DNA of 64,000 nt from Orbicella franksi (GCA_964199315.1 OZ116711.1:5766001-5830000); one strand, 5' to 3'. Counted from the first letter of the stretch, positions 1 through 53,171 are shown. The notes: generated by a model from the sequence alone, not told the origin. Numbers and translations are program-made.

Positions 1-13
1 TCTTGTTTAACTG

Positions 14-3000
14 TTATTCTATTTCAGATCTCTTACAGATCCTGTGTATACTAGTAGCATTTTCGTTTGCGGTCCCTTGCCACATTTGCATTTGTTTTTT
101 TCCTTGGGCGTTACTCACAATGTCAACATCTGGACTGTGAGAATCCAAATTAAATATCCTATGGATAGGTAGGAGATAATCATTGCGAAGCGAGAAAAGT
201 CTTCTCAAATGCTGTTTGTCCCCACCAGTGATCCTCTCTTTCATCACAGATTCCCCCTAATTGACCAAAAAAAAGATGGAACTTTTCATGTTTTTGTCGT
301 AAACATTCTGCGGGGATTAACTGATATATTATTTAGTGGTCATCACACGAAAGAATGAATTTAATTTAACCCCTTCGATGCTAACTTTTGCGGCCAAAAC
401 GCTCTTTTCTTAACCGTTGAATTTGTTTTTGGCATAATTTCCCCAAACTTTGCTAGAAAAGCATTTTTTTTTCCATTCACTGGAGCGAGATTTTGATAAT
501 GATTGCGTATTGTTGCGAGTTCAAGCAATTCAACCAAACTAGTCCACTGAATTACAAAGAGCTTTTGAGATTATGCCATGTAACACTTTTCACTATTCAA
601 AACTCGTCTTTTACGAACTCTATGTACATTCCTGACATTCAAAATTCAAATGGTTAACAGTGCAAAAAGCCTACGCCGAATTTGTCAGTGATTGTGAATT
701 ATCAATTAAAACGCAAAGATTGTGTTTTTCTTTCATTCTTTTCTATTTTTGCCTTGTTGTTGTAAAAATGAATAAAAAGTAGTAGGAGAAAGATGCAAAG
801 ACTGTATTATCCCATAATTAATTGGGAAAGATTGGCAGATCCTTTCTTAACTTTATCGTCAGCTGGCCTACCGTATCCTCATACTCTTCGTAGATCGTCT
901 GTGATCTGTCAACATCGGTGTACTCTGAATAGATTGCATACATGAATAACATGAAATGGAATGCAGTGTAACGGTAACATAATCAGTCGTTCGTCTTAAA
1001 ACTGTATCGAAACTGTCGTCAGTGGTGACCACATCATATTCGGAGAGTACATCTCATTTTACTAGTTAAGAACATGTACCCCAAGGAATGCTCAAACTCT
1101 AGAAACACCATTTATATATCATATACTGTGTTACGTGTTGTTGAGAAACAAAGAGCGGAAACTTAGGCTTTGATATGAAAGTTTTCCCCTTTCGAAATGA
1201 TAGCATTTCCACAATCGAGAAAAAAAAGCAACGGGAGGTCCTTGCCATTTAACATGCGTACAAATGTGTATATGTCTGGATTTATGGAAACAGTGTTAAA
1301 GAAAGCGCGTCCTGCTCAAGGGTTTTTTTCTCGCCAGGGATTATTTCGAAGTAGACGATATAAAAATCAAAAGGAATGTCAGTCTTTTTTTCCACCACTC
1401 TCTTATCTTCCTTTTCTTGTACCTCTCTCTCTATCTTTTTCCGCATTGACACGGTTTTCATAAATCCAGTCATATATATAATGACACTATTCACATTCAA
1501 ACTCCAACAAAACGGGTAATACAATAATTCACACATTGACACATAATTAAAAAGATAACTATTCATGGTACCTGAAACATTGTCTTGAGAAACGAACTCG
1601 TACATATCATCCAGTTCCTGTGGTTGTTGAGATACCTATAAGAAGAGGACGATAATAGCTAAAATGAGGTGGAGGTGTTGCCTAGTACAGTCCTAGTGGG
1701 AGGGGGGAGGAAATCCCATATAAAAAGGACGGTGTTGCTCTTCCTACTTTTTAGGGGTTTAAAAGCGGTGTTGGTACCTCTTAGGATGTTCAGCCTTAAA
1801 AGGTCCACAACGGGAGCTTTTGCGGTGCCTTTTAGGGTATTAGGCCGACAAAATATGACCGGGGATAAGGTGATGATTTAGAATTTGTAGCTCTTAGGGT
1901 TGAAAAATATTTCAGGCCATACCCACAAAACAGGATCTTGGTACCTCTTGGAGATTCTTTTGAAAATTTCCGACGAGCACCCGTCGCTTTTTGTATGGGA
2001 GCCCTCCCCCAAAAAATATCCCTATACATTTACAAGTGAAAAGTTAAATTTGAATAAACCCCCATTAGCCAAAACAACAAAGCGTTGGAGAGGGCTGCTG
2101 CAAGCCTTATTTACAAATAAAGCAAAGACAAACACGAAATTAACAGATGGAAGCATAAAAGAAAATGAGCAAATCAGCACAAAATTATGTAAATTTAAGT
2201 TACTATAAAAGCATATACTACTAATCTATACAACTTTAAGTAATAAACACGCATACGGTCAGCGGTTCTGATAAAAGACAGCGTTGCTTTTTCGAACTCC
2301 TACATTTCACGCGTCCACTGGAAAGTTGATTAATTGAGCTAGTTGTCAAAGTAACCAATCAACAGTGTAAATTATGACATAAGTCTAAACAGCAAACTTA
2401 CACTGACAATGTCAAGCTCTAAGTGTGGTGGGTTACGCCGTAGCTTTTCTTCCCCTGGAAAAAGAAAGGAACAAAGTCAGCGATTGTTTTTTGGATTCGT
2501 TTGTTGATATGTTTTGTCCGTTTCGCGATTGGATCTTGCTACATTTTATTCCGGCACTTAAATTCACCCACATCCCTCTCCTGATCCCTGCACCACAATG
2601 GCCCGTTGAGCTCGTCCCACAATCACCCAAATCACCAACCCCAATCCACGTTCACTGACTGAACGACTAGACTTTCTGACACATTCACTTCTTCACTCTT
2701 CTCAAGCTTATAGGGAGAAAAGCTAATCGTCTTAAAAGCACGTTCCATTCTGGGTCGAAAAAACAAAACCAGAGTAGCTAAAAGTAGACCGGCGTGGCTT
2801 GTTTAGTCTTTTATCGCACACGGAAGCCTAACTTTCGAAAAGGCAGTTCCCAAATTTACCAAGACGGTGAAACAAATTAATATAACCTCATATTAACGGT
2901 GATCATTAATGAAGTTCGTCCTTCGAGAGCCTAGTTAACTTTGCTGTAATAATCAGCTAAAAATCTGAAAAAAACGATTAGCGAATTTGGAGGAAAATGG

Positions 3001-38900: not shown

Positions 38901-41900
38901 GAATTACCTGCACTGAGCTCCAGAAGGATGAGGTATCTTCTTATATTCCACGCCGTAATCGATATCTGGCTTCTGTCGCACACTGTCTGCACACTGAATT
39001 TGTCCACACATAACATCTCTAAAATGATAGAATTTAAAATTTTCTTTATACTTGAAATTAAGGGAGACACGGTGAAACAATGACTAGAGTACTAGACTAC
39101 GAGTTTAGAGGTCTGGTGTAGAGTTCTGAACGCAGTCACTGGCATTATATTTGTGGGGAGGGCACCACCTAGGCGCAGAGCAAATACTTCTAGAAACTTT
39201 GTACTTTTGAGCATAAGAAATAATAAAAATTGTGAGCATAAATTCAGCCTGTTGAGCAATTGGGCACTCAAAGACCCGACAAGACTTCACTTTACAGATT
39301 AAACTTCGTGTAGCGAGAAACGTTTTAGTTGCAGCTGACTACGGCCAAAACAACAATAAATCACGCAATGCATGCAATTTGCCATGGCCAGCTTTAGATG
39401 AATGCAATCAGATTCCAAGTTCCAGGGCAAATTAGCTAGTGACTTCATTTCTATATAGAAATGACATGTTTAGACTGAACTAACAAGCGCATATTACAAA
39501 GGAAGGTGGGACCAAAACGAACACGGAGATTGGTTGTTAATTTTATTTTCGGCTTCAAGTGAAAAACGTCACCGTACGTTTGTTTCAACAAATTGCCAGT
39601 TTTAAATTGCTTCCCGAGTAATTACTCCACATATCTATGAATTTAATCTTCATTAATTCTTGGCTATATTGTTATTAATAACACAATTCATCGCTATGGA
39701 TCATCTAACCTTTTCGCACAGGGTTTTGGTTTTGCGGCATCGCATGTCCCGTATGGCGTTCCTTCTGAGTTGTATTTTTCCCAGCATGCTTTCCCGGCTG
39801 AACGGGCAGCTTCAGGTAGATGATAATACAGGTTAATTACAAAGCCTAGACTTAAGGCGTTGTCCTTTCTCACTAAAGGAAAGGAGGGTATTCCCAATCC
39901 TGTTCGGTTTGTTACTAAGTTACTTCTCTTTCTTAATAATCAATGGTATGGTTGTAAGGCACAAAGAATATAAATTAGTAGTGACATATTCTCTGCGTGC
40001 GATGTGCGATTTTTATCTCTGATATATGGCAACGGACCCTATAACCACAAACGAGAGAGGTAAACTCCTGTGAACAGTGTAGCTTTCCAGATAACGGTGT
40101 AAAACTTGTCCCTGTTGATCGACCCAGCCTGGATTACTGGTGTAGCAACTTCCCTCCGTAGCACGTTTTGATATGGTTTTCTTGGGTTAAACGTCACATA
40201 AACGTTTCTTTACTATTCATCAGTTGGGAGATACTTACTTCCTCCCCATAGATCAGAACACTGGGTGTCCGCTGTGTCGGCACACTTCCCAAGGTGGCAG
40301 TAGGACTGCAAATTAAAGATAAACTTTGATGAACGATCAATCAGCCAATCAGTGAGCGGGAGGACTAATGATGAGGGGAGGTACCCTGCGCGTCAAGCGT
40401 AACGCGGAAGGCTTGAAGGGGAGGCTATGAGCAAGGGAGAGTGAAACAAATGAACGAGGGAGCGAGTTGGGGAGTCATTAAATACGTTCAGTCAAAGTCG
40501 GAGATTAATCAATTAATAAATCGTTTGCCTTCAGAGTTAGTGTAACGTGGACGAAGGAAAACTATTGTCATACAGAACACAGCACAACACCGAAGCTCAC
40601 ACGCTTCGTACACACTCACTCTGTGGAGGCGCGACGATTCACTAGGGCAAAGGCCCCAGCTACATTAGTCAAAAACGATTGCTGTGCATCATGCATAAAG
40701 TAATTCTCTGTTAAATGGAGTCCAAGAATGCTTCTTTTAGTCTCGCCATATTAAATATCTTCGTTACACCCAAAATTATGCAAAACTAGAACGAATTCGT
40801 CAGCTTCTCGACAACAAACACTTGAACGATATCTGAATCTGACACGAGAGGGGAAAGTTAGAAGAACAAACTCTTACATTAGCCTCTAGTTTATCTCCAC
40901 TCTCACTGTAGGCCTTCCATTCTTTTCCATCTTGACTATACCAGAGGTAATACCCTTCAACTAAGTCCCATTCTTTCCCTTCAACCGCGACTCGTGTAAC
41001 CATTTGAAGCTGCGAAGAAGATACGAAAATTATATATATGATTTCACAATACAAGTGGTATTTTAAAAATTAAAATTAATTTAGTAATTAAATTTAATAA
41101 TACAAATTATTCAAATTTAATGATTAAAATTATTCTTCAAAGAAACTGCCTGATCTTGGAGAGGCAAAGTTAGTAACGTCATTTTATCACAATCTCGTTT
41201 TAATGTCAACTCCAGACAACTGTTTTTAGAGACAGAAAGTCCGTTGTGCTTCTCGGGTGAAGAAGAACATGTTAAAATTTTACACGCCAGTTGATATCTT
41301 TACAGTATTTTTTAATTATTTTTTTTTCGATACTTTTTCCGAATCTGTTTTTGGTGGCAAGTAGATAATTCATATTCAAGCGATGCTCAGATGCCTCATT
41401 TTAAGTCATATATTTAGCAACCTAAGGAAAACTTCTTCTTAACTAAACTGGAGGAATAAAACCTTCTTCGGCCTAGATACTACCAGCGTAAAGTAATATC
41501 AGGGCTTTAGAAGTGTTAGTAAACACAACACCACACCTTTCCAAGGTCGATCTGTAGATATTCGTCTTTATCGCTTTTATCATTTGGTTTACCACACCAG
41601 GCCTTGGGTCCATTGAGACGAGCATACTTAGGCAACCACTCATCACTGAGATTAGATGAAGCAGTCAGCTGATTGTCTCTGACGTCACCGCGCGATATAC
41701 CAAGAGAAAGAGCACAATCTGCGGAAATATATGAGGAGTATGCCTAAACCAAACAGGATAATAAACAGAAGCGCAAGAGATTTTCGTTCATTTCATGTTG
41801 TCACTCGTAAATTTTTGAAAGGGCTTTTGAAAACCTTCCCTACAATTTGGGATCTTGCCCAGGAAGACATTACATGTGCAAAGCTTGCATAATGGAATAT

Positions 41901-44900
41901 CAAACCAAACATATGTCTTGGACGGAAGATTTTGCCGTCTGTGTGCGTGCCAGCCTAACCAGCACATTCACAGCCATCTTCTTTGAGCCAAGCTCCACGC
42001 AAGGCCTCCACGCTCTTCCACCATGAGCATCTGAGCTCCATCAGTCGTGGCGGGTACACCAAATAAATAAACCAAATAATCTCCCCAGCCAAATTAAATT
42101 AAAGAAGCTATATCACGGTTTGCTCATCTTGAAAAGTTTAGCCTAAATGTTTCAATTTCGTCTTTTGTAATCCGTGAATCTTTTCCATCCTTAACTATCC
42201 TTGTTCCTTTTTGATTTATTATCATCTCTTTGGTATTATGCTATCTTGTGCGTGGTCAAAGTATGATGACTGAGCTCCTTTAAAAATGATATTACCAAAG
42301 TCTTTTTAACTTTTTATTTAAGCATAAATCAAACGTAAGTGTAGTGATTACCTTGCTTCATGAATGTTACTTTAGTACGTTCCTCATCACATCCTTGCCA
42401 TAAACAACATTCCACTCCTTCTGCAGGTGCACCTCCATAAAGATGGAGACATTTACCAGTCGGTTTGTGTCGTAAAGAATGAGCTATTGAAAATCAAAAA
42501 AGAAAAAATGCATTTACATCAGGAAAAACCAACTCAATTAGCCTCATCGACCTTACGTTTAATCTTGGTCCGAGAACTTAACTTGAGAGAAACTTAGAAG
42601 CATTAACGCAAGGTGGCCAAACGTAATTGGCAATGAATAGCTGCTAAGAAGGACTAACATGAAAACGATAGTAACATCACAAATTGGCAAGAAATGGCGT
42701 TGGATTGGCCACACGCTCAGAAGAGATAGCAAAAATGTTGCAAGACAAGCCTGGAACTATCAGCCGCATGGAAAGAGGAAAGTTGGACGGCTGGGGAACA
42801 ACTGGAAGCGTTCTATGCTGCAGGAGTTGAAAAGAGTGGGCTTCTCCTGAGAGAGAGTCAAAGCACTGGCAGAGAACTGAGCATGTTGGAGGGTACGGGT
42901 GGACGCCCTATGCTCCCCCGGGGGTGATAAAAGATAATGAAGATGAATTCTTAAGTACAAGTTTAAGTACAAATGTACTGGCAAATGGACAAATCATACC
43001 GGCAGTTCTTTCAAACTTGGCATCTTGAGGCTGACATTTGCTGCTAATCATAAGCTCACATCTCTTTCCTTGAGCTGGCTTTCGCTGGCACACCATCTTG
43101 CCACTGCAGTGATGTTTAAGGGTGCCATCCGCTGACAGAGTAAACTGCATGAATGGTTGATCGCAAGGCTTTGATTTAGTGAGCACAAGAATAGTTCCAT
43201 CAGGAGGCTGACATTTCCCTCTCTGAGGCTTGATACACATTCCGCTTGCTTGTAGGAGAGGGGTCGGGGCCGAAGGTTGCGCTGCAAGCCAGCAGTGAAA
43301 AAAAGTTGTAGACAAAATTAAAGTACAGTCGAACCTCCCATAACGGCCACTTCTCTACAACGGCCGCGTTTTTCCGTCTCGGCGGACAGGCCATACACAT
43401 TCACTCTTCTTTTAACCCCTCAACAACGGCCACCTCTCCACAACGGCAACGGCCACTAAAACTCGTCCCAACTGCCAAAATATCCTCTCGACAAATTCCA
43501 GTTAATCAACGACTGACGAGTACACAAAATCCCATTTTTTATTGTAAACGGTGACTAAAATTGATCCACACGTACCGCGCGCCGTTGGTCTCTGTTTCTG
43601 TTAAGTTTCTGTTTTATTGATACATTTTGATTTAAACTTTTCTCTGTCCCCAAGGTGTCCGTTGTGGAGAGGTTCGACTGTAGACGTAAATTCTTGCAAT
43701 TAGGGAGTTTAAGCATGCGCGTTTTTGAGACGCGGACGGCAACCAGAAGAGAAGATTTCGCTTGCTAGGACAATATTGTCTCCCAGATTTTTTATACTAC
43801 TCATCTCTAATGAAGAAAAGATACTTAGCAATGTGAATATGGTTGTGTGAGGACAAGTTAAAAGTGAAAGTAGCTCACTTCCGGCTACCGTCCGCGTCTC
43901 AAAAACGCGCGTGCTTAAGTTCCCTAATAATTTTCCTCTTTACACGTAGACCGCCATCTTACCTTGTTCTCCTGAACAGCCATACAATTCTGTTTTGAGG
44001 CACATCAGCGAATAGCTCCAATACTGAGGGTTTATCCTGAAATACTGCGCCTCGATCGGTGGATTTAGCACAGTGTTCTTAGTCTGATCTTTGGTGGTTG
44101 GTCCGACAAGAAGCTGAAGAAAATTCAGATTTCAACAATTACATAATCCAAACAGTTTTTCTCTAGGGCGTAATTGGTTAGTGCCATTATTAACTTTATT
44201 TCCCCGTCTCCCCATGACTTGCAAAAACGCCACCAATCTGTGTACGAAACAATAACCAGACCGAGATCGAAACAAGAGAAACTGTGTAGTATTTTAAGAG
44301 GATTGTGGTTAATTATACATTTTCCTGGGAAATGAAATTGTAGAGGCAGTTTTTGTCCTAAGTGCATGCCATGAGAAATTAGTGTTTTTAATGCCAACAA
44401 TTTTACGAATGTTTATTTGCGTGGGGACATGTACAAATGGAGCGATGATGCTAAACTAAACGTGAGATAGGCTGACTTTGAAAATCTGAAAAATATCCTA
44501 AAATACAGTTCAAAAGACAAGTGATTTAAAACTAAGCCCTTACCTGTCCTTTACTGTTACAAGGATATCCGTCGTAAATAAAAGAATCTGGAGGGCACTA
44601 AAGTATATAAAAAACGGCAATGTTAGCTTGTATATTTTTAACCACCCCTCCTCCCCCCTTCCCCAACTTTATATTCCACTCCTCCTCAAATCTACCCCAA
44701 TGAAAACACTTATGGCTACCTGTGGCTAAGGTTTGGAAAGAACATGACTGTTGTAACTGTGTTCCGGTTTGTTAAAAATCGATTGCAAATACATGGCATG
44801 TAGCGTATTGATAAAGACAGTCAACCATTCGCATCTGGCTTAATTGCATGGAAGCGTATTGTCCACTTCAAGACAGTAACAAGTATTAAAAAGATACAAC

Positions 44901-51100: not shown

Positions 51101-53171
51101 CCATTGATACCCTTGACTTCGTAAGTATCCTTTTAGATGTGAGTTATGAGGAATATGAACGGCTACGTTTTGGATTTTTGTAACGCGTCTAAACCACAGT
51201 TGGAAGACGTGGTTTTCTCGCAATGGTTAAATACCAACCTTCATCGTGATCCATTCCAAAGTTGTGTCCCATTTCATGAGCTGTGGCTATCCACGGTCCC
51301 ACAGAAATGTAGTGATCCCACTACAATAATTAAAACACACGGTGGAAAAAGTCAACACGAGTTTACACCGCTAACACGATTTTTTTTTTCTTCTTGCATT
51401 CGGTAAACATATGCAAAACTATAATTGTTCTTTTCTAGTTTCAGTTTAGTTGAAATTGAAGGATATCGCAAAATACTACTTAAGCCTCTCAGTACGCAAT
51501 TTTAGCCCCCAAAAGGGGCGCAATCAGGTGCTGGAGGTTATTTCTGGCCATTGTTGCATTGAAAACTTGTCAACATTGTGGTATAGTGCGCGTACAGAAA
51601 GTTAGTTTTTTAACGGTTTTTGAACAAAAAAAAAAGCAACAGGAGATCCCTGACAGCGCCAGTTAAGGCTTTTCGTCTTTCGTTCTTCACTTCCCCTTTG
51701 TACCACACTCTTTTGTAGACTGTTTTCCTTCTAGTGGCCTTAAACGTTAGACAACTTGTAATTTCATCTGCGGAACAACTAACAAAGAGAAAACGGAAAC
51801 ACAAAGAGAAAACGTAAGCACTAGAAAGTGTGAATGGATAGTCGGAGAATGCCGAAGGCTTTCTTCGATTTTCAGGAGACAAATTTGTAGGTTCAAAACG
51901 TGGATCTCTGTCCCGATTTCTCTCATCGCGCCTTTAAGCATGCTTTGTTGTAAGCTTTTGTGAGACTATTTCCTCCTTCATCAACTGATCATTAAAAAAA
52001 AAAAATTTTGTGAAAAGTGCTGACAGCACAAGTGGTACAAGGACCATGGCCCGCTTACTCGGTCCGGATTTCGTCGGGTTTAGCAGTCAGAAAGTTAAAG
52101 TAAAAGGACACGTTCTATTACCGACACTATTCCAGAAGAGCTTTCAGTACACATGCCATATAATGCTGCCATTCCTGCAGCATCGGTCCAGCTGTTATTA
52201 CTGTGATGAGAGAGAGTAGTGATAGTAATAAAAATTTAATAATAATTTATTTAAAGTCGTGACACAGGAAGCGGTTGCCCATTCTCCCGAGTCAGGGGCT
52301 CATGATAAAAGTGCTCAAAAAAAAAGTAAAATAAAGTACGAAACGAATGTGAATTGAGAAAGAGAAAAAGAGTAATCATAACATGTACGTAAACGATGGT
52401 CAAATTGTTGTTTGAGGTTAGGTTTTACCCATGGAATTGATATACATAGCTGCGTTATTGAATCTCTATAAGTACCAACGTCCATCTGGTGACCATCCAT
52501 ATTGTTTAGATTTTTTTTTTTCTTTTTCAAAAAAAAAAAAGGATTTAAAGGAAATTTAATTTCTTTAGATTTAGCTCCTGTATGGCTTTGAAAGAGAACC
52601 CTAAGAGTTCCATAACATGTAACAACAGTGAAAATTCGGCGCCATGGAAGATCCTAAGCGACACCAAAACACAATTTTCATCTTCTTCACTACCTTGCAC
52701 TGCCATGTAAAATGTGCCCTCCTCCCTCCCCAGAAAGTATGGCAAATTGTTAGGAGAAATTTTAGTTCAATCACCACTCACCACATCAGCTGTGCGTTAT
52801 CGTGATCAGGAAAGGTTTTCATCAGCGTGTTCTTGCGATATTTTGCAAATCTGTCGTAGTATTCGCCTGCAATTTCACTTCTGACAATTTTATCGCCATT
52901 GGTCCAGAATTCCATAGCAACCAGGACGATTCTGATGTTGATTTTGCTGTAAATCTGAAAGAAATTCTTACTTACAACTAGAACATGTGCGTATGTTACC
53001 TTATAGAGCTGTTTCGACAAAGAGAAGCTGAGGAATGAAACATTGGCGAGAGCGCTCGCCTCCCACCAATATGGCCTAGGTTCGATATCGGCCGGTGCCA
53101 TATATGTATTTGGGTTGAGTTTGATGTGAAGTTTATATGAAATAATTCATATAAGAACTGCGGTTGTAGAT

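Follow-up and report, generated by a model that had tools for sequence, protein, structure and literature searches.

A beta-trefoil nested in a putative circularly permuted discoidin domain within an ADAM-type metalloprotease gene of Orbicella franksi

Five minus-strand exons in a 64,000-nucleotide stretch of the Orbicella franksi genome (GCA_964199315.1, OZ116711.1:5766001-5830000; hereafter the window, to which all positions refer) very probably form a genuine, constitutively spliceable cassette of a gene for a secreted multi-lectin ADAM-type metalloprotease. In the topology we propose, the chain would exit the ADAM scaffold at the junction of the disintegrin and Cys-rich domains, enter a discoidin (F5/8 type C) barrel in mid-domain, reach the native C-terminal Cys of the barrel, build a full beta-trefoil, re-enter the barrel at its native N-terminal Cys and leave it exactly at the point of entry, after which the ADAM Cys-rich domain would continue. 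The product would be a trefoil inside a circularly permuted discoidin domain inside an ADAM. Since the native discoidin termini lie side by side and are joined by a disulfide (putative here), a trefoil can bridge them; the new termini were next to each other in the original chain, so that a loop can accommodate the module. We found no paper in the searchable literature describing an ADAM with such an insert, and no report there of a permuted discoidin domain; the architecture appears undescribed in that literature, though it is already present in database gene models, since RefSeq entries with this architecture exist, all labelled 'uncharacterized protein'.

The host gene and the cassette exons

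The host gene, also on the minus strand, covers roughly 57100 to 17000 and is predicted to encode a multi-lectin ADAM-type metalloprotease with the domain order propeptide, reprolysin, disintegrin, cassette, ADAM Cys-rich, EGF, TSP1, three fibrinogen-related domains, TSP1 and a C-terminal trefoil. The window gene has an intact HExxHxxGxxHD motif and an intact Met-turn. The disintegrin domain and the ADAM Cys-rich domain (ADAM_CR) are both present, with the 293-aa cassette between them; in the 95% identical contig L007 from a close relative, Pfam recovers ADAM_CR positions 8-106 directly after the insert (E 1.7e-18). A crude Kyte-Doolittle scan of 10 orthologues recovered no transmembrane segment with a cytoplasmic tail, the sole hydrophobic segments being N-terminal, and the downstream exons of the window encode TSP1, fibrinogen-related and trefoil modules. 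These features point to a secreted ADAM-like protease rather than a classical membrane ADAM.

The cassette occupies a phase-0 intron bounded by the end of the last disintegrin exon at 44544 and the start of the first ADAM Cys-rich exon at 40305. The initial annotation had placed five minus-strand exons here and had read their order as disintegrin, C-terminal third of a discoidin domain, trefoil, N-terminal two thirds of a discoidin domain and ADAM Cys-rich (Table 1). The exons stand at these positions. All five are bounded by canonical splice sites (AG as acceptor, GT as donor), have mutually compatible phases and splice to 879 nt, or 293 codons with zero stops, in a window without N runs; the order is borne out by the Pfam coordinates and the phase-0 flanks. 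The cassette introns also carry transposon debris in the form of a reverse-transcriptase-tail-like ORF on the plus strand (42659-42850) and a 54-nt inverted repeat (43699-43928).

Table 1. Exons and domain matches of the ADAM-type gene in the window
Feature	Position	Strand	Evidence
Reprolysin-family Pfam match	52963-52784	-	E 1.5e-12
Catalytic zinc-site exon, same gene	51237..51320	-	HEMGHNFGMDHD intact; Reprolysin-family Pfam match
Met-turn exon, ..GCIMGG.. (CIM)	51031-50981	-	Reprolysin-family Pfam match
Two upstream disintegrin-domain exons	46171-46070 + 45484-45407	-	Pfam Disintegrin profile 13-43 and 45-69; orthologue alignment
Last pre-insert exon, end of disintegrin region, 18 aa CPPDSFIYDGYPCNSKGQ, ..DGYPCNSKGQ	44544..44597	-	GT donor, phase 0
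Cassette exon 1: discoidin (F5/8 type C) C-terminal third with the native last Cys end (..ELYGC), phase 0/1	43963..44113	-	F5_F8_type_C profile 88-118; orthologue collinearity
Cassette exon 2: ricin-type beta-trefoil lobes 1+2, phase 1/1	43000..43281	-	ORFs 83-98% identical in related coral metagenomes
Cassette exon 3: third trefoil lobe, phase 1/1	42352..42483	-	Pfam Ricin_B_lectin 91-122
Cassette exon 4: discoidin start from the native first Cys (DCALSLG..), phase 1/0	41537..41718	-	F5_F8_type_C 1-43, E 2.4e-7
Cassette exon 5: discoidin middle (..YSQDGKEWKAY..KLEAN), phase 0/0	40878..41009	-	F5_F8_type_C 48-88
First post-insert exon, ADAM Cys-rich, SYCHLGKC..DLWGG, phase 0 in	40239..40305	-	Pfam ADAM_CR 11-29
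TSP1 exons	35138-34965 + 19223-19050	-	Pfam

Predicted fold of the permuted discoidin domain and the trefoil

The canonical N-to-C strand order of the discoidin domain is absent: the segment that corresponds to profile positions 88-118 lies about 190 residues ahead of the one that corresponds to 1-88 in the genome, in L007 and in every orthologue. Joining the pieces in silico in their native order, with the N-terminal pieces followed by the C-terminal one, yields a sequence of 151 aa, of which positions 2-151 align with the C1 and C2 domains of factors V and VIII (E 8e-22), covering them from first to last Cys with no gap at the junction. The two pieces are thus exactly complementary, as had been claimed at the outset, and the fit is far beyond chance. 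All 19 family members compared keep the native first and last discoidin Cys, which the window also has, and a second inter-piece Cys pair is kept in 17 of the 19, both residues being lost jointly in the remaining two, from two lineages. Read from its sequence, the discoidin domain here appears to be a circular permutant cut at about profile position 88. It resembles the F5/8 type C domains of factors V/VIII, lactadherin and DDR1 in its full-length match once re-ordered and in the first-Cys/last-Cys pair, and differs from them in being permuted at that position, with the native termini linked via a whole trefoil. The discoidin domain of DDR1 has a second disulfide, which the second Cys pair of the cassette resembles.

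An AlphaFold (AF2) model of the cassette alone, computed as a monomer, has a mean pLDDT of 90.7 and a pTM of 0.77, with pLDDT values of 81-97 on both discoidin pieces. When modelled between the disintegrin and Cys-rich domains the cassette retains a pLDDT of 85-95, while the disintegrin part is poor at 30-45. In an alignment that is not permutation-aware, 128 residues of the model, taken from positions 1..277, superpose at 2.3 A (Z 13.8) on residues 637-779 of 6eon_A, a 143-residue domain. The pLDDT and pTM values, this single structural match spanning both pieces and the covariation of the inter-piece Cys pair indirectly support a model in which the two discoidin pieces form one beta-sandwich barrel in cis; the halves associate in the prediction as the initial annotation had expected.

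The middle domain of the cassette likewise adopts a beta-trefoil fold in the model. Its residues ~50-188 match the ricin-B-type trefoils of Mitsuba-1 (Z 21.5) and CBM13 (Z 19.4), the structural matches overall reaching Z 19-21.5, spanning 126-135 residues at rmsd 1.6-2.2 A and having 19-24% identity, and Foldseek E values range from 1e-7 to 1e-8. At the sequence level, the joined trefoil of L007 matches Pfam Ricin_B_lectin positions 9-122 at 24.8 bits, which is below the 29-bit gathering cut-off, and the (QxW)3 motifs are degenerate, their positions in the window reading QF, KF and TF. A three-lobe repeat with one conserved aromatic residue per lobe is nevertheless discernible, together with eight conserved Cys. 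The domain is best regarded as a divergent member of the fold, lectin-type in its predicted structure and not a clear member of the Ricin_B_lectin family by sequence. In comparison with ricin-B-type lectins (MytiLec/Mitsuba-1, 5XG5; CBM13, 1KNL), it shares the predicted fold and three-lobe repeat, whereas its eight conserved Cys, its degenerate QxW motifs and its position as an internal linker rather than a free lectin set it apart. A second, paralogous trefoil at the C-terminus of the same protein is 29-41% identical to it.

Transcripts, conservation and phyletic distribution

L007, a JGI contig from a close relative (dS 0.36), was recovered using a degenerate pattern across the first junction. 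It is collinear with 12 consecutive exons of the window at 87-96% nucleotide identity, with the introns between them removed, and aligns gap-free over 333 aa at 95% amino acid identity. Joining of the cassette to the ADAM exons at 44544>44113 and 40878>40305 had been predicted, and both junctions occur exactly in this relative's contig (..NSKGQ|LLVGP.. and ..KLEAN|SYCHLGKC..). Its 5' end retains sequence matching the upstream intron, which, given the removal of the introns between exons, fits partly processed RNA and not genomic DNA. Paralogues are likewise represented by full-length transcript contigs without introns, among them a Pocillopora paralogue found as an intronless 5668-nt Logan contig with a single ORF of 1861 aa. 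Cassette exon order is identical in two independent scaffolds, L001 and L002, the latter from another coral-associated metagenome; as conservation in L002 is confined to the exons, the order is not an assembly artefact. Cassette dN/dS is 0.072 against L002, 0.034 against L001 and 0.052 against L007, and the cassette is under strong purifying selection.

The same Pfam order (Disintegrin, trefoil, F5_F8_type_C 1-88, ADAM_CR from about position 8) was found in Hydra, which has five paralogues with the cassette architecture, and in Hydractinia, Clytia, Nematostella, Actinia, Pocillopora, Porites, Oculina, Desmophyllum and the nemertean Tubulanus, the sole bilaterian member found. The expected split, reversed-order F5_F8_type_C pieces thus do occur in other cnidarian proteins, at the same ADAM site. 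Alignments of the window cassette to each of these relatives run over its full length at 30-45% identity, and the cassette intron positions and phase-0 borders are kept in Nematostella, Tubulanus and Hydra. The 18-aa pre-insert exon with its phase-0 donor is present in these three genera and also in Rhopilema, where an insert-free scyphozoan homologue (P0161) has the same intron, 575 nt long and empty. The common ADAM position, architecture and introns across anthozoans, hydrozoans and a nemertean imply that the cassette is ancient.

These data bear on several alternative readings. That the cassette lies outside the ADAM protein, whether as an assembly error, a captured gene fragment in decay or an independent gene within the intron, seems to us exceedingly improbable: prior to these tests the mid-domain order of the fragments did resemble an assembly or duplication artefact, and the introns hold the transposon debris mentioned above, but L001 and L002 share the exon order independently, spliced L007 links the cassette to ADAM exons at both ends, dN/dS lies at 0.03-0.07, and over 20 gene models and transcripts from two phyla show the identical architecture. 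It is also quite unlikely that the discoidin pieces pair between chains through 3D domain swapping, in which case the cassette would serve to dimerise or polymerise the protein. Split domains whose parts are joined by a bulky linker are classically prone to such swapping, Cys covariation and conservation would be expected equally for pairing in trans, and the AF2 prediction was run on the monomer only; against this, the adjacent trefoil termini would hold the native discoidin termini in cis, the model reaches high confidence as a monomer, with no partner present, and both pieces superpose on a single compact domain. Rather doubtful, though compatible with the main reading, is an optional, alternatively spliced cassette, whose skipping would leave a textbook ADAM, with isoforms differing in their targeting. 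Its 0-0 phase symmetry means that skipping preserves the reading frame, the joined flanks read as a normal ADAM motif (PC..x..YC.xGxC), ADAM22 and P0161 align straight through the insertion site, and the empty Rhopilema intron indicates that the scaffold tolerates absence of the module. However, no skipping transcript was found, the cassette being included in every transcript-derived contig examined, and the strong purifying selection and two-phylum conservation argue for regular use.

Relation to known proteases, possible role and origin

The window gene shares with the ADAMs and P-III snake-venom metalloproteinases (M12B adamalysins; ADAM22, 3G5C; VAP1, 2ERO) the propeptide, a reprolysin domain with the HExxHxxGxxHD motif and Met-turn, the disintegrin domain, ADAM_CR and an EGF-like module; for the disintegrin and Cys-rich region of the insert-free homologue, ADAM22, atragin, VAP1 and chains like them are recovered with E values of 1e-23 to 1e-25. 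Relative to this scaffold it carries about 290 extra residues, or two domains, at the start of the Cys-rich region, the insertion site aligning between ..YSC-DGVQ-G and ICFGGRC of ADAM22. The family further differs from ADAMs in being without a transmembrane segment and cytoplasmic tail and in its C-terminal half of TSP1, fibrinogen-related and trefoil modules, to which hydrozoans add PA14/GLEYA. With the ADAMTS proteins it has in common a secreted reprolysin-family protease, TSP1 repeats and ancillary matrix-binding domains, but it possesses a true ADAM-type disintegrin domain, ADAM_CR and EGF in place of the disintegrin-like, Cys-rich and spacer regions of ADAMTS.

In RVV-X (P-IIId, 2E3X), lectin-fold light chains on the Cys-rich domain act as a substrate-selecting exosite; these light chains are C-type-lectin-like, and each is a polypeptide of its own, tethered by a disulfide. 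The RVV-X heavy chain is among the sequence matches to the disintegrin and Cys-rich region of the insert-free homologue. By analogy, the principle may be the same in the coral protein, namely a lectin-fold module fixed to a metalloprotease scaffold as an exosite, although the coral modules have discoidin and trefoil folds and are part of the same chain at the disintegrin/Cys-rich junction. We consider it somewhat better than an even bet that the two lectin-type folds serve as a glycan- or matrix-binding exosite, which would target or orient a protease with an intact catalytic motif.

As to its origin, the cassette probably entered a pre-existing phase-0 intron before the cnidarian/bilaterian split, as a captured mid-domain-to-mid-domain slice of a (discoidin-trefoil)n gene. 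The initial annotation had suggested such a capture, and it fits the 0-0 phase, the conserved intron positions and the empty intron at the same site in the jellyfish homologue; the donor step itself is one we infer, no (discoidin-trefoil)n gene having been found in any search. It is possible, if on the whole unlikely, that the permutation instead arose stepwise in the ADAM gene through insertion of a whole discoidin domain, tandem duplication around a trefoil and removal of the exons on the outside. In the textbook scenario circular permutants arise by duplication and later truncation, the gene itself could have supplied trefoil exons from its paralogous C-terminal trefoil, and a donor array did not turn up. 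On the other hand, no intermediate architecture occurs among about 25 homologues, in which the cassette is either complete or wholly absent, and one-step capture requires fewer events.

Based on these observations we propose, with slightly more confidence than doubt, that these proteins define an undescribed ADAM subfamily older than the cnidarian-bilaterian split, in which a single exon-shuffling event put a mid-domain slice into a phase-0 intron and produced a natural permuted discoidin domain that encloses a trefoil at the disintegrin/Cys-rich junction. If this is true, the family would provide a natural worked example of a general rule on slices of tandem domain arrays, whereby any slice whose two cuts fall at the same point of consecutive repeats has its ends side by side and is insertable into a loop of another protein.

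Cassette exons and host gene

The five open segments of the cassette lie on the minus strand of an ADAM-type gene, in eukaryotic sequence with a GC content of about 40%, and each is bounded by canonical AG/GT borders. Spliced together they give 879 nt, or 293 stop-free codons, which in chain order encode the C-terminal third of a discoidin (F5/8 type C) domain (the C piece), a beta-trefoil and the N-terminal two thirds of a discoidin domain (the N piece). When the discoidin pieces were put in silico in the order N-then-C, the resulting 151 residues aligned from first to last cysteine with the C1 and C2 domains of factors V and VIII (E 8e-22), the join being gapless in these alignments. The initial annotation had described a circularly permuted discoidin domain wrapped around a trefoil and inserted in an ADAM, and its account of the cassette proved accurate in all details.

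The host gene is collinear with its full-length homologues from about 57100 down to about 17000 (tblastn), and the domain order so derived is corroborated by Pfam on the window exons (see table). The cassette sits at the extreme start of the Cys-rich region, at its junction with the disintegrin domain. An insert-free homologue aligns to ADAM22, atragin, the RVV-X heavy chain, VAP1 and similar chains (E 1e-23 to 1e-25), which places the insertion point in a short ADAM22 loop flanked by ..YSC-DGVQ-G and ICFGGRC. The catalytic motif is intact at the sequence level, and the host protein is probably secreted because a crude scan of the orthologues detected hydrophobic segments only at the N-terminus. 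The C-terminal trefoil is paralogous to that of the cassette (29-35% identity within orthologues) and is seemingly encoded by three exons as against two for the cassette trefoil.

Features of the cassette and its host gene in the window, in transcript order
Feature	Position	Strand	Phase	Match or other detail
Propeptide	first in transcript order	minus		tblastn of homologues
Reprolysin domain	after propeptide	minus		intact HEMGHNFGMDHD site and CIM Met-turn
Disintegrin domain	after reprolysin, directly before cassette	minus		tblastn, Pfam
Exon directly upstream of cassette	44597-44544	minus	ends in phase 0	ends ..DGYPCNSKGQ
Cassette exon 1	44113-43963	minus	0/1	Pfam F5_F8_type_C profile 88-118
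Cassette exon 2	43281-43000	minus	1/1	no Pfam match reported
Cassette exon 3	42483-42352	minus	1/1	Pfam Ricin_B_lectin profile 91-122
Cassette exon 4	41718-41537	minus	1/0	Pfam F5_F8_type_C profile 1-43, E 2.4e-7
Cassette exon 5	41009-40878	minus	0/0	Pfam F5_F8_type_C profile 48-88
Exon directly downstream of cassette	40305-40239	minus	begins in phase 0	begins SYCHLGKC..; ADAM_CR profile 11-29
ADAM Cys-rich domain, then EGF-like module	after cassette	minus		tblastn, Pfam
TSP1 repeat	35138-34965	minus		tblastn, Pfam
Three fibrinogen-related modules	about 27300-19850	minus		tblastn, Pfam
Second TSP1 repeat	19223-19050	minus		tblastn, Pfam
C-terminal trefoil	18203-17033	minus		37-41% identical to cassette trefoil

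Two further features were observed in the cassette introns. Between the discoidin-C exon and trefoil exon 1, the intron holds a 54-nt inverted repeat (43699-43752 and 43875-43928), whose arms are 87% complementary and lie 122 nt apart and which may represent a MITE-like element. The plus strand of the intron that separates the trefoil exons carries a 63-aa ORF (42659-42850; ..WIGHTLRR..GKRKVGR..) that we take to resemble a LINE-type reverse transcriptase in its C-terminal tail and that is probably transposon debris. Direct repeats flanking the cassette, sought as traces of an insertion mechanism, were not found.

Assembly, splicing and selection

Coral-associated metagenome scaffolds yielded ORF calls that share 83-98% identity with trefoil exon 1. 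The exon order of the window is repeated in one such scaffold, L002 (3175 nt), from a pair of disintegrin exons through the discoidin-C exon and the two trefoil exons to the first discoidin-N exon; its introns are shorter, and the exons alone can be aligned (78-80% nucleotide identity). An independent scaffold with identical exon order and conservation confined to exons leads us to reject misassembly, and bears out the exon order given in the initial annotation. Furthermore, a search for the predicted first junction with a degenerate DNA pattern retrieved a single JGI contig of a close relative, L007. This contig matches twelve consecutive window exons collinearly (87-96% nucleotide identity), with the intervening introns removed. 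Its 492-aa ORF is 95% identical, without gaps, to the spliced window product over 333 residues, and both junctions that had been named for testing, ..NSKGQ|LLVGP.. and ..KLEAN|SYCHLGKC.., occur in it exactly. At its 5' end this contig begins with sequence that still corresponds to the upstream intron, and at its 3' end it enters sequence unlike the next window exon; it thus appears to be a partly processed transcript rather than genomic DNA.

Over the cassette codons the Nei-Gojobori method gave dN/dS values of 0.034 against a second metagenome scaffold, L001 (dS 0.38), 0.052 against L007 (dS 0.36) and 0.072 against L002, where dS is near saturation (1.44). Thus four independent lines, namely assemblies, spliced RNA, selection and deep conservation, establish that the cassette is truly part of the protein, and on the same grounds we reject both a nested gene within an intron and pseudo-exons.

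A proposed single discoidin barrel from two pieces

An AlphaFold2 model of the Pocillopora cassette alone, computed from a 24-row alignment that included the window exons, reached a mean pLDDT of 90.7 and a pTM of 0.77, with values of 81-97 in both discoidin pieces. In a longer Nematostella construct comprising disintegrin, cassette and Cys-rich regions the cassette scored 85-95 and the disintegrin part 30-45; consequently we make no statement on the orientation of the module on its scaffold. Residues from about 50 to 188 of the cassette model form a beta-trefoil, with Z-scores of 21.5 to Mitsuba-1, 20.3 to a Crenomytilus lectin and 19.4 to CBM13, and Foldseek also recovered this fold. To residues 637-779 of 6eon_A, 128 residues drawn from the model range 1..277 were aligned (2.3 A, Z 13.8). 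As the two discoidin pieces together supply about 131 residues and the target stretch has 143, this match implies, albeit indirectly, that both would lie in one compact domain of the model.

This bacterial galactanase domain is the best single-domain match to the permuted discoidin and spans both pieces. It would share the permuted strand order provided that the aligner keeps chain order, as we assumed, and this hints that permuted connectivity may already exist within the wider galactose-binding-like fold. Canonical discoidin structures were absent from the top 50 of the Foldseek and VIA-align lists, in which trefoil matches dominate, presumably because chain-order aligners match a permuted domain over a single piece at most.

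The cysteines offer a second view of the contact between the pieces. The native first and last cysteines of the discoidin are invariant (19/19 sequences), and a second inter-piece pair, formed by a cysteine of the C piece and the 'WC' cysteine of the N piece, is present in 17 of the 19. In the two exceptions, a Hydra paralogue and the Tubulanus protein, both positions are replaced together (columns 138 and 356 of the cassette alignment A3), a coincidence with a probability of about 1 in 171 if losses were independent per column. A two-disulfide pattern occurs in discoidin domains such as that of DDR1, and the two conserved inter-piece pairs of the cassette match it. This pattern and the coincident loss argue, from sequence covariation, that the pieces make the contacts of a normal barrel. 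Models and covariation together support the proposal that the two pieces form a single barrel in cis.

Distribution, origin and implications

An exhaustive HMMER search with trefoil exon 1 recovered two long proteins with the layout of the window gene, one from Hydra vulgaris (XP_047134262.1) and one from the nemertean Tubulanus polymorphus (XP_074645823.1). Further searches added four more Hydra paralogues, Hydractinia and Clytia among hydrozoans, and two Nematostella genes, Actinia, Pocillopora (two paralogues), Porites, Oculina and Desmophyllum among anthozoans, along with several intronless transcript contigs (e.g. a 5668-nt Logan contig with a single 1861-aa ORF). A word-indexed search with a Hydra cassette query returned Hydra paralogues only, other taxa being reached with a mixed alignment (A2) and a Nematostella query. 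All members show the same order: Disintegrin, C piece, trefoil, F5_F8_type_C profile positions of about 1-88, and ADAM_CR from about profile position 8. End to end, the window cassette is 40-45% identical to those of anthozoans, 30-34% to those of hydrozoans and 32% to that of Tubulanus, the closest full-length proteins being 40-46% identical over the cassette. In a maximum-likelihood cassette tree the window copy joins the base of the anthozoan clade on a long branch, its nearest relatives being metagenome and transcript contigs only (L001, L002 and L007), and it represents either a divergent paralogue or a distant lineage. Tubulanus, the sole bilaterian member found, groups weakly with sea anemones on a long branch. 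Hydra vulgaris also has shorter ADAM-like gene models (P0162-P0167 and P0174, 524-1066 aa) carrying parts of the cassette, with only the discoidin-C piece matched in P0174 (residues 382-431); truncated paralogues, isoforms and incomplete models are possible explanations.

Exact mapping of exons in the Nematostella, Tubulanus and Hydra loci revealed a shared plan in all three: the exon before the insert encodes the same 18-aa segment and closes in phase 0, the borders of the five cassette exons fall at matching alignment positions (to within one or two codons in Hydra), and the exit into the Cys-rich exon is again in phase 0. The homologue from the scyphozoan Rhopilema esculentum (LOC135683539) shares the downstream architecture and lacks the cassette, its Disintegrin (400-477) abutting ADAM_CR (482-591). 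At the insertion site it has a phase-0 intron of 575 nt (15533-16107 of locus L008), in which no traces of cassette exons were detected. This gene thus exists naturally in a cassette-less form. On the simplest reading, the cassette predates the split between cnidarians and bilaterians and was cleanly lost from the Rhopilema gene; alternatively, the latter descends from an insert-free paralogue. Under either reading the ADAM scaffold works whether or not the module is present, and the module behaves as a symmetric exon set. The empty intron and this symmetry fit the origin by exon shuffling suggested in the initial annotation. We found no (discoidin-trefoil)n donor gene, in which the two domain types would alternate, and a stepwise origin inside the gene is therefore a possible, though less likely, alternative.

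The cassette is real, spliced, selected and ancient, and its topology is that of a trefoil inside a permuted discoidin inside an ADAM. We propose that its two lectin-type folds would act as an exosite, binding glycans, matrix or microbial surfaces and thereby targeting the secreted protease, a role to which we give slightly better than even chances. The remaining modules are also of binding type (fibrinogen-related, TSP1 and the second trefoil, with PA14/GLEYA in hydrozoans). RVV-X has lectin-fold light chains, which would be analogous in principle to the proposed exosite. RefSeq labels these gene models only as 'uncharacterized protein' or with generic ADAM-like names. Literature searches of incomplete coverage, hence yielding absence of evidence only, found no description of an ADAM with such an insert or of a permuted discoidin domain, and nothing relevant on ADAMs with discoidin in corals, reprolysin with FA58C or the RefSeq LOC identifiers.

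Natural circular permutants are rare and their origins are usually guesswork. Here exon boundaries and phases, an empty homologous intron in a jellyfish gene and a two-level nested topology are still visible after hundreds of millions of years, and the exon-shuffling route to permutation and domain insertion is therefore directly testable. For protein engineering, the models suggest that a discoidin barrel may tolerate being newly opened near profile position 88 while its former termini are bridged by a domain of 140 residues. Together these genes define a conserved subfamily of ADAM-like proteins in which a new module, a lectin unit both nested and circularly permuted, sits at the disintegrin/Cys-rich hinge. 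The lectin-laden members of this subfamily are predicted to be secreted and catalytically intact, and it occurs in model cnidarians (Nematostella, Hydra, Hydractinia and Clytia) where knock-outs and imaging are routine.
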